Source: Octopus bimaculoides
Lineage: Eukaryota
Direction: 5' to 3'
NCBI RefSeq assembly: GCF_001194135.2
Contig: NC_068984.1
Coordinates: 38,937,444-39,001,443 of the forward strand
Length of the DNA: 64,000 nt
Every line of letters starts with the position of its first letter. Within the stretch, counting starts at the first letter, position 1. The notes under the pieces were generated by a model that saw only the letters and a program-made list of their open reading frames with translations, was not told the DNA's origin and ran no database searches. The position numbers and the translations under genes were made by a program. Below are positions 15,050 through 47,236 of the stretch, in pieces.

Positions 15050-15480
15050 AGACACCTTGGGCAAGTGTCTTCTACTATAGCCTCTGGCCGATCAAAGCTT
15101 TGTGAGTGGATTTGGTAAACGGAAACTGAAAGAAGCCTGTCGTATATATGTATATATATATATATATATATATATATATATATATATATATATATATATA
15201 TATATATATGTATGTGTGTGTGTTTGTCCTCCTAGCATTGCTTGACAACCGATGCTGGTGTGTTTATGTCCCCGTCACTTAGCGGTTCGGCAAAAAGAGA
15301 ATAAGTACTAGGCTTACAAAGAATAAGTCCTGGGATCGATTTGCTATTGCACAGAAAAGATTCCTTTTAAGATTGCGTGATAGGATTGATATCCAGACAA
15401 CATCTATTTTGTTTAGGAGTGACCATACTGCATGGCTGCAGTCAAATGACTGAAACAAGTAAAAGAGTAAAAGAGTATAT
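15050..15480 (+). mobile_element. SINE family B copy with internal (TA)n and a 90-bp foreign insert (15340-15429)
   Basis: SINE body flanks an insert identical to 16673-16762. Confidence 0.85.
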
Positions 15481-16379
15481 ATATATATATATATATGATG
15501 GACTCACCCATTGAGGATGACATATGAGCACTCTGCTTTTGCAGAATGACCTGCACAAATGATCTGTTTATAGTGATCAAATCGATGTTGTCTGAACAGG
15601 TGCACTGTGAACTATGTATCAGGTGTTAAAATGACTGCAGAGCAACATGAGATGAAGTGTTTTGTTCAAAAACACAATGCACCACCCGGTCTAGGAACTG
15701 AAATCATGATCTAGCGACACAATATCTTATCCTTTATTTGTTTCAGTCATTTAGACTGAGGCCATGCTGGGGCACCACCTTGAAGAACTTTAATTGAATG
15801 CATTCACCCTATTAATTATTTTTTAAGCCTGATAGTTATTCCATCAGTCTCTTTTGTCGAACTGCTAAGTTATGGGGATGTATACACATCAAAACCAGTT
15901 GTCAAGATGTAGTGGGGAACAAACACACACATGGCTTCTTTCACTTTCCATCTATCAAATCCACTCACAAGGCTTTGGTCAGCTTAAGGCTATAGTAGAA
16001 AACACTTGCCCAAGGTGCCATGCAGTAGGGCTGAACCTGGAACCATGTGGCTGAGAAGCAAACTTCTTACCACACAGCTTAACAAAAAGTATACACATGC
16101 ATAATTATCAGAATATCATGTAGGAGTACATGTGAAATAAGCATGGGAGGGAAGAATTGTAAGAAGTTGAGGCTTATATTCATTCTCTGTAGAGCTGAAG
16201 TTTCCTGGTCTTAGATGAGATGCTTATTTTGTGCTGGTAGGAATAAGTTCAGCTATCATCATCATCAGGTTGAGCTTGCTCAAACATTTTTAATTTACAC
16301 ACACCTTCTATCTCAGTCTTGCATTAGTTGAGTGAGATCTTCAGAGAGACATTCAGTGTCTCTGGTGAGTTGATCTACA

Positions 16380-16840
16380 TACATTGTGTTCAAATGACCT
16401 GCTTGAGTACAGCCATGCTTTGGCGTCCATAACAGTATATCACTTACCAGCTCTTGTTTAGCTCACCAGCAATGCCCTGCAAAGTGCAGGTGCCTTTCCC
16501 TTATGATGGAGGATACAGGAAGATTTCCATACAGCTGATTCTTGGTGAGATATGTTCTCCAAGATATGTTTAAGACTGCTCTTAACATTCGGAGTGTCAG
16601 TTCCATCGAGTTCCATTGGATTCTAGTCTTTTGGTAAGCGACCAGGCTGCTATTCCATGTAAAAGGACTAACTTTGCTATTGCACAGAAAAGATTCCTTT
16701 TAAGATTGCGTGATAGGATTGATATCCAGACAACATCTATTTTGTTTAGGAGTGACCATACTTTGGCTGTGTGAGTTTTTACATCTTTTTCAGTTGAGGC
16801 CCTCTCAGAACCAGTCTTAGAGGTGCGGTAAAGGATCATG
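16380..16840 (-). mobile_element. RTE-clade LINE 3' fragment (second family)
   Basis: ORF 16597-16839 WSLLNKIDVVWISILSRNLKRNLFCA...WSLTKRLE resembles the RTE post-RT region. Confidence 0.65.
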
Positions 16841-45008: not shown

Positions 45009-45149
45009 TTAACTTTATCAGAGGCTGACTGGTATGTGTATATCTAGGTAGAACTCGAGAAGATTAATCTAACTAGTTTGGGTTTGGATCCCAGTTGACC
45101 AAGAAGGAGAATATTTTTTTGAGGATCACAAAGTCCTTGGATGTGTAAC

Positions 45150-45399
45150 AGTATCCAAGAACATTTGTACTGGCAATGCCAGTGCTTGACTACATCGTAT
45201 GATGGTGCATCATCACCATAAACTTCTTTCATCTCATCGAAAGCCTCTTTTGGTGTACGACCTTTCAAGCATAAGAACCTGATCACTGATCTGCATTCAA
45301 CTGCCTCCATTACAACATCTCAGTCCATTTCAGCAATGTAGAGATATGTATGATTATACCGGAAGTGGGTCAGGATAAATCTTTAATGAACACCCCTCG
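45150..45399 (-). mobile_element. Mariner 5' fragment (TIR plus N-terminal HTH)
   Basis: TA|CGAGGGGTG terminus at 45401-45391; MEAVECRSVIRFLCLKGRTPKEAFDEMKEVYGDDAPSYDVVKHW. Confidence 0.85.
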
Positions 45400-47236
45400 T
45401 AGTTATAATGAATGTATATAAATATCATCTCATGTGTCAGACATTACAGCTACCACTGTGATTACATCACAGATCTTTTTAAGCAATTATATACACACAG
45501 GTTTCTGTGTATACACACAATACACAAATGCATCCACACGTATATATGTATACATACATTATATATATATATATATATACACACACACACATACATATAC
45601 ATATGTGTGTGTAATTATCCCTTTAAGAGATTAATATATCCTCTAATTAGCTTATATAGGCACACAATTTGTCTGCACAGTGAACTGTGTGTATTCCAAA
45701 AATATACTTCAGTTTTAGTATATACTACTTTTCTTCTTAACATATATATGTATGTAAACAGATTTGTTTGCATATACACTTATACATTATTCAGAAAAAT
45801 ATTTCATTATATCTTATCTGTTTAACGAGCATTCAAATGTGAGGCATTTTCGTTTTGCTTTTTTTGTGTGTGTGTGTGTTTTGCAGTTGTATAGAAGGAT
45901 AAACAGGATAAAATTGCCATGGTTTCATTGNNNNNNNNNNNNNNNNNNNNNNNNNACTATGCAACAAAATTGGTCGCCATTCTAAAATACAGATGTGCCC
46001 TGAAAATCACGTCTGCTATTTATGTACTAAACCTGAACTCTTTTCAAAATAGATGGGTTGAATGCAGTAAATTTCGTATTTCTATCTGCCTTCATTAACT
46101 CTTGGAGATCTCAGGTCAAAAATTGGCACACTACGATTCTGTGATGGATGGGGTCTGAGAAATGGTCCAACTATTAAACTGTCTCTTCAGTGCCTAGTCT
46201 GTGTTTTCCATCACCAATGCTGTCAAACATTCTGTTACACATGATATAATTACTACTTGTGTATCTGAGGAAATTAGTGATAGACAGGCATTTACTGGCA
46301 ACACATCAGTTGCAAATAACTACTAAATTTCTAAGCCAGGATGTGAAACCAAATCCACATTTTACCTAAAAGTTCTCTGTCTACTGGTTTCATCTGTTGC
46401 ACTAGGAAATTTTGGGCAGAAAACTAACCTCTTAACCTTTTTGAGTGGGTCAAAGCTTATACAGAGAAAAAATCCTTTGATTGGCCTGACCTAATTTAGT
46501 TAGGAAGAATATGAATATGCAACCAAAAGTCAGTTCTTTCTCTTTGGTCCCTTGGCTGCTGGTCAGAGAGTATCTCTCTTTCTCACTTTGAGTGTGGCCT
46601 TTCATTGTGCAACAACACAATTCTTAATCTTTCTATCTACCTAGATTCTCTTTTTCTCTTTCTAGTAATTACCCACAAATCAAGCTAACTATGCACAGAA
46701 TGCTGTTTACCACAACAGCTCAAAGTAGTTGTAACTTACTTTGTAACAATTACGATGATAAACAAAAGTCCTTTCAACTAACAATTAATATCTTCTCTCA
46801 TTTATTCGATGCATATTATCGTTACACATGATCATTATAATTACTGACCTCTGATGTTTATAAACTATTAAGATTGGATCTTACTCTTAACTGTAACAAA
46901 TTGGTGATGCTAACATGTACACATATACAATGTTGCACTTAACGATTACAAATTGGTAATGCCAATGTGCAAATATATTTATTGACAATGCTTTGAATTA
47001 CTCACGCATTATCTCAACTTAAAGATTTTAATGATGTGGCAGTTTATTTTTAGAATGACATTTTCGGGTAAATGTGAGAGGCTAGATCTGGCCTGTTTGA
47101 ACATAAAGCAGGTAGAATATTTTGGCTGGTTTAAATGCTAAAGGATTAACTTTATCAGAGGCTGACTGGTATGTGTATATCTAGGTAGAACTCGAGAAGA
47201 TTAATCTAACTAGTCTGGGTTTGGATCCCAGTTGAC

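Follow-up and report, generated by a model that had tools for sequence, protein, structure and literature searches.

Several described processes can leave templated or duplicated sequence in a genome or in its assembly. Polymerase-theta end joining combines a deletion at the break with an insert identical to nearby sequence and with short microhomology at the junction. The filler-DNA or synthesis-dependent patches described in plants and flies are hundreds of base pairs long, are taken from ectopic, often nearby sequence, and are accompanied by deletions and by short homologies at their borders; we know of no documentation of such patches in cephalopods. The 5' junctions of long interspersed elements (LINEs) show irregularities of their own, among them template jumping, twin priming and extra 5' sequence. 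In microhomology-mediated break-induced replication and fork switching, templated insertions arise when a polymerase changes template at a microhomology (PMC8421209), and short-read assemblies may contain false duplications (Ko et al. 2022, PMC9516828). Here we analyse a stretch of 64,000 nucleotides from Octopus bimaculoides (RefSeq assembly GCF_001194135.2, contig NC_068984.1, positions 38,937,444 to 39,001,443 of the forward strand), called the window below, in which three near-identical direct duplications (pairs 1 to 3) involve retroelements. In each pair we distinguish a native copy, the source, from an inserted copy, the island. One of the pairs is a genuine copy that has aged, while the two near-perfect pairs could have arisen either by recent break repair or through mistakes in the short-read assembly of 2015.

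The public reference of O. bimaculoides is the Illumina shotgun assembly of 2015, re-scaffolded with Hi-C in 2022 and characterised as gap rich and fragmented. The heterozygosity reported for the species is 0.08%, and a separate PacBio HiFi assembly exists (PRJNA1076263). The whole window was compared with itself by BLAST, retaining matches of at least 95% identity over at least 50 bp and excluding microsatellites. The three near-identical direct duplications with zero or one mismatch, from which the original prediction started, were all recovered: pair 1 at 15340-15429 = 16673-16762 (90 bp, no mismatch, offset 1333 bp), pair 2 at 37034-37297 = 38605-38868 (264 bp, one mismatch, offset 1571 bp) and the core of pair 3 at 44947-45099 = 47084-47236 (153 bp, one mismatch). 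The offset of pair 3, 2137 bp, is an estimate, since the gap at 45931-45955 lies between its copies. Exact matches of 90 to 264 bp are beyond chance, and the three pairs therefore stand out; only two other matches passed the thresholds. One of them, 12198-12252 = 12263-12317, is a 55-bp overlap on either side of a 10-N gap at 12253-12262, and it proves that false duplication occurs in this assembly. The other joins two young copies of a short interspersed element (SINE) lying 34 kb distant from each other.

For comparison with sister species we used one locus of Octopus vulgaris (L007) and one of Octopus sinensis (L008), reached through the C15orf61-like gene, which together cover the window from 13.4 to 35.9 kb and hence pair 1 only. 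A further gap, at 32240-32293, falls between pairs 1 and 2 and outside every pair. Its flanks are adjacent and collinear in O. sinensis, with only a (TA)n run between them, and they are collinear in O. vulgaris, where an insertion of about 390 bp is present; it follows that the window is continuous across that gap. Loci of Argonauta hians, retrieved through YME1L exons, were dropped as comparators, as they are too distant at 79% DNA identity.

The core of pair 3 differs at a single position (45078 T versus 47215 C), and its exact match stops at both ends. The 153 bp given in the original prediction hold for the core; the true extent is longer, 243 to 261 bp, and the copy is older than the core implies. 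The match continues leftwards to 44842-45099 versus 46976-47236, with 94.25% identity over 261 columns, and within its secure portion, 44861-45099 versus 46995-47236 (about 243 bp), we counted 6 substitutions and one 3-bp indel. The differences are unevenly spread, 6 of the 7 falling within the leftmost 90 bp (binomial p = 0.012). On its left side, the source is made of a miniature inverted-repeat transposable element (MITE) of a piggyBac-type family (about 213 to 230 bp), which has copies in O. vulgaris (L007, ~30135-30364) and in O. sinensis (L008, ~21235-21464). One MITE insertion is present in these two species, and the corresponding site of the window, near 16293-16298, is empty. The outgroup copies allow the indel to be polarised: source 3 carries a derived 3-bp deletion with respect to island 3 and to every outgroup MITE copy, and at least four derived substitutions are private to island 3.

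At a heterozygosity of 0.08%, the probability of seven allelic differences in 243 bp is about 2e-9. Taken together, the polarised 3-bp indel, the substitutions specific to the island and this low heterozygosity show that pair 3 is not one locus written twice but a true paralogous copy, in which source and island have each had time to change. On this evidence the window contains at least one genuine local copy-paste event. Simple allelic haplotigs were ruled out for pair 3 by the count of differences set against the heterozygosity, and a pair of long terminal repeats (LTRs) was rejected because LTR features are absent and the interior holds a mariner fragment. The two copies might also be thought to be independent insertions of one young transposon family, given that the left part of pair 3 is mostly the dispersed piggyBac-type MITE, with copies in both sister species. 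Yet island 3 is without the left terminal repeat of the MITE and carries the 87-bp non-MITE flank of the source, with one mismatch; since independent insertions cannot share a flank, this explanation is refuted. At its right edge, island 3 meets the 5' end of a LINE, LINE#3, exactly. Both the LINE homology and the tblastn matches begin at 47234, and three base pairs (GAC) are common to island and LINE. LINE#3 itself has 5 internal stops and frameshifts.

Pair 1 lies within a SINE, and its exact match ends at both edges of the 90 bp. At the left edge of island 1, the 6 bp TTTGCT are common to the island and to the host SINE, whose homology to its paralogues reaches 15345. About 20 to 35 bp of the conserved SINE core are gone where the island sits, being replaced by it. 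Confined to the lineage of O. bimaculoides, the SINE is absent from the orthologous site of O. vulgaris and of O. sinensis; at this (TA)n site the two sister species have another, tRNA-like SINE. The source of pair 1 lies in frame in an open reading frame (ORF) of the minus strand (16600-16845), which is unbroken across both edges of the source and whose region is homologous to the C-terminal region of the reverse transcriptase (RT) of LINE#3 (E = 8e-7). Moreover, source 1 is found at about 92% identity in the orthologues of both sister species. Its in-frame position in a LINE ORF and its conservation in both species thus identify 16673-16762 as the native copy. The stretch between the two copies is collinear with O. 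vulgaris and O. sinensis, which ruled out a misplaced contig, and a long target-site duplication was rejected because no single element makes up that stretch. The (TA)n site (15045/15495 in the window, ~31155-31650 in L007 and ~22256-22572 in L008) is, in its own right, an insertion hot spot, where O. vulgaris has a further SINE.

The copies of pair 2 are identical at 263 of 264 positions, the only mismatch being 37214 A versus 38785 G, and the exact match stops at both ends. The polarity of the mismatch is ambiguous and was dropped as an argument. Both copies adjoin or lie in a second LINE, LINE#2, which matches the Pfam domain RVT_1, is spanned by tblastn matches with RT homologues at 37931-38579, and has 8 internal stops and frameshifts; its tail was defined by alignment to SINE and LINE tails. 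The alignment of LINE#2 with LINE#3 (37207-37843 versus 48404-47761) crosses the right edge of source 2, and an internal repeat of about 222 bp (36976-37068 versus 37198-37287) crosses the left one. As alignments run across both edges, 37034-37297 is identified as the native copy. Island 2 lies at most 25 bp from the last LINE homology detectable by tblastn (38579), and the same search found no LINE homology beyond the island.

Twelve ORFs spanning or neighbouring the junctions were looked up exactly and matched no record; for the ORF at the island 2 junction, the best match of a homology search had 61% identity. With regard to composition, the islands are arbitrary local segments, namely, a piece of a LINE ORF (island 1), the end of an ORF with its 3' untranslated region (UTR; island 2) and a partial MITE with 87 bp of flank (island 3). 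In this respect the original prediction of local copies templated from 1.3 to 2.1 kb away was borne out: they are direct, lie at retroelement breakpoints and are not independent insertions. The accompanying statement that all three sit at a retroelement junction applies exactly to island 3 and to within 25 bp to island 2, but island 1 is inside a SINE and replaces part of it. Microhomology had been proposed at two of the islands and was indeed found at the left of island 1 and at the right of island 3, with none at island 2.

The three events are not alike in age, the divergence between copies being 0% for pair 1, 0.4% for pair 2 and about 2.9% for pair 3. Pairs 1 and 2 are much more recent than the elements that host them; LINE#2 and LINE#3 share 77% identity, with a dN/dS ratio of 0.20. 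Compared with the level expected from alleles or read errors, pair 1 (0/90) falls within it, pair 2 (1/264) is arguable and pair 3 exceeds it, with 7 differences and a polarised indel. Two inverted SINE copies (7087-7249 and 40886-41046), 34 kb apart and 97.5% identical, share their 3' tail and (GAT)n end with the family of LINE#2 and LINE#3, and their identity indicates that this SINE/LINE partnership was active recently.

It is possible to hypothesize, with an evenly balanced degree of confidence, that the islands were produced by a deletion together with a templated filler insertion, either in break repair or in replicative template switching. A break would have occurred inside or beside a retroelement, with the loss of some sequence; a 3' end would then have annealed, through 0 to 6 bp of microhomology, to single-stranded DNA 1.3 to 2.1 kb off on the same chromosome, would have been extended by 84 to 261 nucleotides and finally rejoined to the other end. 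The route might be synthesis-dependent end joining or replicative template switching. The LINE 5' ends at islands 2 and 3 would then be end-points of deletions, and not the original points of truncation, which would explain why these two islands sit at LINE ends. The copy relationship, its direction, the assignment of source and target, the loss of SINE core, the microhomology at two junctions and the age that pair 3 has reached can all be observed at the locus; that a break occurred, that a polymerase acted and in which order things happened is inferred. Island 1 has the anatomy of a textbook patch, with a core loss of about 20 to 35 bp, an 84-bp insert and a 6-bp microhomology at one edge, and here the replacement of lost sequence by the insert is seen directly. 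For islands 2 and 3, it is only the truncated LINEs that suggest such a replacement. None of the junctions contains a run of N or a long shared k-mer, which favours this reading. If real, the islands would represent a known kind of repair scar with an unusual reach and, so far, they are not evidence for a new process.

Among the described systems, polymerase-theta end joining is matched best by pair 1. Different from that pathway, the templates here lie 1333, 1571 and about 2137 bp away, beyond the proximity that characterises it, the inserts measure 84 to 261 nucleotides, and four of the six junctions are blunt, with 6 bp (island 1) and 3 bp (island 3) of microhomology at the other two. The islands resemble filler-DNA patches in being arbitrary ectopic copies with a deletion and short border homologies. 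Microhomology-mediated break-induced replication is usually met in cancer or in complex rearrangements, whereas no further rearrangement was found at these three sites. The likeness to irregular LINE 5' junctions consists in extra sequence between a truncated LINE 5' end and its flank; unlike those, the islands are much younger than the LINEs, are direct and not inverted, and no target-site duplication enclosing them was found. With the false duplications described by Ko et al. (2022, PMC9516828) the pairs have in common near-identical copies on one scaffold, a short-read and gap-rich assembly and, in one pair, a gap; different from these, the copies of pair 3 differ by too much to be alleles, given the heterozygosity of the species.

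A number of observations weigh against deletion with templated filler as the origin of all three islands. Apart from pair 3, a search of the 64 kb that allowed for divergence up to about 20% gave no other clear case of a local, low-copy duplication in direct orientation. A steady neutral process should leave many older copies, and the window is almost without them. Three events in 32 kb far exceed, to our knowledge, the known density of such insertions, and the inserts of polymerase theta are short, unlike tracts of 84 to 261 nucleotides copied from 1.3 to 2.1 kb. Known inserts of this polymerase derive, in addition, from sequence near the break. Long-read assemblies of two congeners, 59 kb in all, gave no near-identical (at least 95%) local direct duplication; at the rate of the window, the chance of finding none in 59 kb is 0.06. 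None of the three islands is inverted, a run of N separates the two copies of pair 3, and the window contains a proven false duplication, at its 10-N gap. The 'unusually frequent' process put forward in the original prediction is hence not sustained: it rests on one window, which has almost no older events besides pair 3, and the 59 kb of the sister species hold no near-identical ones. A genuinely high rate of kilobase-range local template switching in octopus genomes, giving direct patches of 80 to 260 nucleotides at retroelement ends, copied from 1 to 2 kb away, seems to us unlikely. Its agent could be a repair polymerase acting at breaks provoked by the abundant (TA)n runs or the reverse transcriptase of a retroelement, and the patches would have to turn over fast or be homogenised by gene conversion.

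A serious competitor, which we consider plausible though somewhat less than probable, is that pairs 1 and 2 are false duplications produced in the assembly, scaffolding or gap closure of 2015 and that pair 3 alone is biological. Possible routes are the filling of a gap with reads that mate-pair data recruited from 1.3 to 1.6 kb away, the collapse of a tandem duplication of recent date, or the placing in series of the two alleles of a heterozygous deletion. The copies of the two pairs are 100% and 99.6% identical inside elements whose decay amounts to several per cent, the window has hardly any older analogues, and all pairs are direct with kilobase-scale offsets, as the geometry of paired libraries predicts. 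Each island, moreover, appears to have exactly one 'backward-jump' junction, such as could be expected from a tandem duplication or from a mate-pair fragment that was circularised. The same window has kept a 55-bp unmerged overlap at a gap of an assembly that is gap rich and fragmented, and the duplicated sequence amounts to about 0.8 to 0.9% of the window, within the 0.3 to 3.8% of same-scaffold false duplication in older assemblies (PMC9516828). An N gap separates the copies of pair 3 only, those of pairs 1 and 2 being without N. Several features speak for the opposite conclusion. For pair 1, the interval between the copies has the same order in O. vulgaris and O. sinensis and contains no misplaced contig. 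Pair 3, which has the same architecture, is demonstrably real. The junctions are blunt or overlap by at most 6 bp, with no N, and to create them, gap closers that work by overlaps or k-mers would need chimeric reads. For this argument we take the assembler of 2015 to have been Meraculous, with libraries of about 350 bp to 10 kb, presumably closing gaps solely through read-supported k-mer paths; how the assembler behaves at such junctions is our assumption. The SINE core that was lost, about 20 to 35 bp, is below any plausible assembly k-mer, and a contig break induced by that repeat is thus unexpected. Pair 2, finally, has a mismatch in spite of a heterozygosity of 0.08%; as mismatches occur both in pair 2 and in the core of pair 3, the joint probability of two heterozygous sites is about 0.02, and otherwise read errors would be needed. 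The artefact alternative already raised in the original prediction, consequently, falls for pair 3, which is real and aged, and stands for the near-perfect pairs 1 and 2.

The islands might instead have been made when the retroelements integrated, by a template switch of the reverse transcriptase followed by gene conversion that kept the copies alike. The switch would have taken place near the end of target-primed reverse transcription, to the RNA of the LINE itself for pair 2, and in pairs 1 and 3 the new template would have been local DNA or nascent RNA. The positions of the islands fit such an origin, since two LINEs of the same family have islands 2 and 3 at their 5' ends (within 25 bp and exactly, respectively), island 1 is within a lineage-specific SINE, and island 2 copies the 3' region of its own LINE; in pair 3, a diverged left part beside the near-identical tract of 153 bp resembles a conversion tract ending where homology ends. 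The decay of LINE#2, with 8 stops, frameshifts and a degenerate tail, is in conflict with this origin. Had the copies of pair 2 been made when LINE#2 integrated, about 16 to 40 differences in 264 positions would be expected against the 1 seen (P <= 2e-6), an expectation that holds unless decay after insertion was negligible, which the 8 stops of LINE#2 contradict; the age of pair 3 is borderline. We found no target-site duplication around LINE#2 or LINE#3, alone or together with their islands, but the family may not make any, and a sustained conversion of repeats of 90 to 264 bp would be an additional assumption. We therefore regard integration as a quite improbable origin, and the capture of local sequence at LINE 5' junctions, offered earlier as a possible source of the duplications, does not agree with the decay of the LINEs.

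The choice between a biological and an artefactual origin of islands 1 and 2 has consequences in both directions. If they are real, three templated patches, each unusually long and copied from unusually far, are preserved in the window; the octopus would then be a natural system for long-range synthesis-dependent break repair, and there would be good reason to survey its whole genome. Should they be artefacts, a widely used reference, in its 2015 and 2022 forms, would hold short dispersed false duplications that no N flags, and such duplications could mimic repair scars, exon duplications or transposon chimeras. The features on which the analysis is based are collected in Table 1.

Table 1. 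Features of the 64-kb window of O. bimaculoides, with positions counted from the first letter of the window
Feature	Position	Strand	Description
Unmerged contig overlap (small false tandem duplication)	12198-12317		55 bp exact; flanks 10-N gap 12253-12262; near (TA)n run
Full-length SINE hosting island 1	15046-15494	+	Internal (TA/TG)n run; terminal (TA)n tail
Island 1 (inserted copy)	15340-15429	+	100% identity to 16673-16762; about 84 bp new
Source 1 (native)	16673-16762	+	Within old LINE, in frame in minus-strand ORF 16600-16845
C15orf61-like gene, first coding exon	24527-24886	-	Pfam DUF4528, E = 5e-44; 100% identical to O. bimaculoides protein A0A0L8FU19
LINE#2, 5'-truncated, decayed	36754-38604	-	Degenerate (GAT)n tail at 36754; contains source 2
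Source 2 (native LINE#2 3' end)	37034-37297	+	Last ~91 bp of ORF and 3' UTR with ~222-bp internal repeat
Island 2	38605-38868	+	Copy of 37034-37297 directly 5' of truncated LINE#2; both edges blunt
Complete piggyBac-type MITE	44800-45012	+	TTAA, CCCTTTAG...CTAAAGGG ends; left part of source 3
Source 3	44842-45099	+	MITE from internal position to end, plus 87 bp of right flank (45013-45099)
Assembly gap, 25 N	45931-45955		Between the two copies of pair 3; no overlap shared by flanks
Island 3	46976-47236	+	Copy of 44842-45099; without MITE left end, keeps 87-bp flank
LINE#3, 5'-truncated at DRVPR motif of RT	47234-48841	+	LINE#2 family; (GAT)7 tail ends at 48841
YME1L last exons	53689-53886, 55196-55438, 63538-63771	-	Within 53.7-63.8 kb

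Some further observations concern the rest of the window and the comparison species. In a YME1L intron, the minus strand at 59538-62223 carries four long ORFs (262, 278, 144 and 153 amino acids) with no Pfam match, and this cluster probably represents either the decayed remains of a large mobile element or a gene that lacks annotation. In the A. hians assembly GCA_054771915.1 (loci L001-L006), a gene of 73 amino acids, annotated in six places on three contigs, corresponds to the last two exons of YME1L. These copies are spaced about 42 to 48 kb apart beside kilobase-scale tandem satellites, which may reflect either a large segmental array or redundancy of the assembly. The contig that follows a 146-N gap in the window opens with 11 G (3062-3072), a run that may be a read-end artefact or real. 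Finally, a perfect inverted repeat of 53 bp with a 163-bp spacer (50446-50498 and 50662-50714) may belong to an element that forms a hairpin, or its two arms may be the ends of a small transposon.

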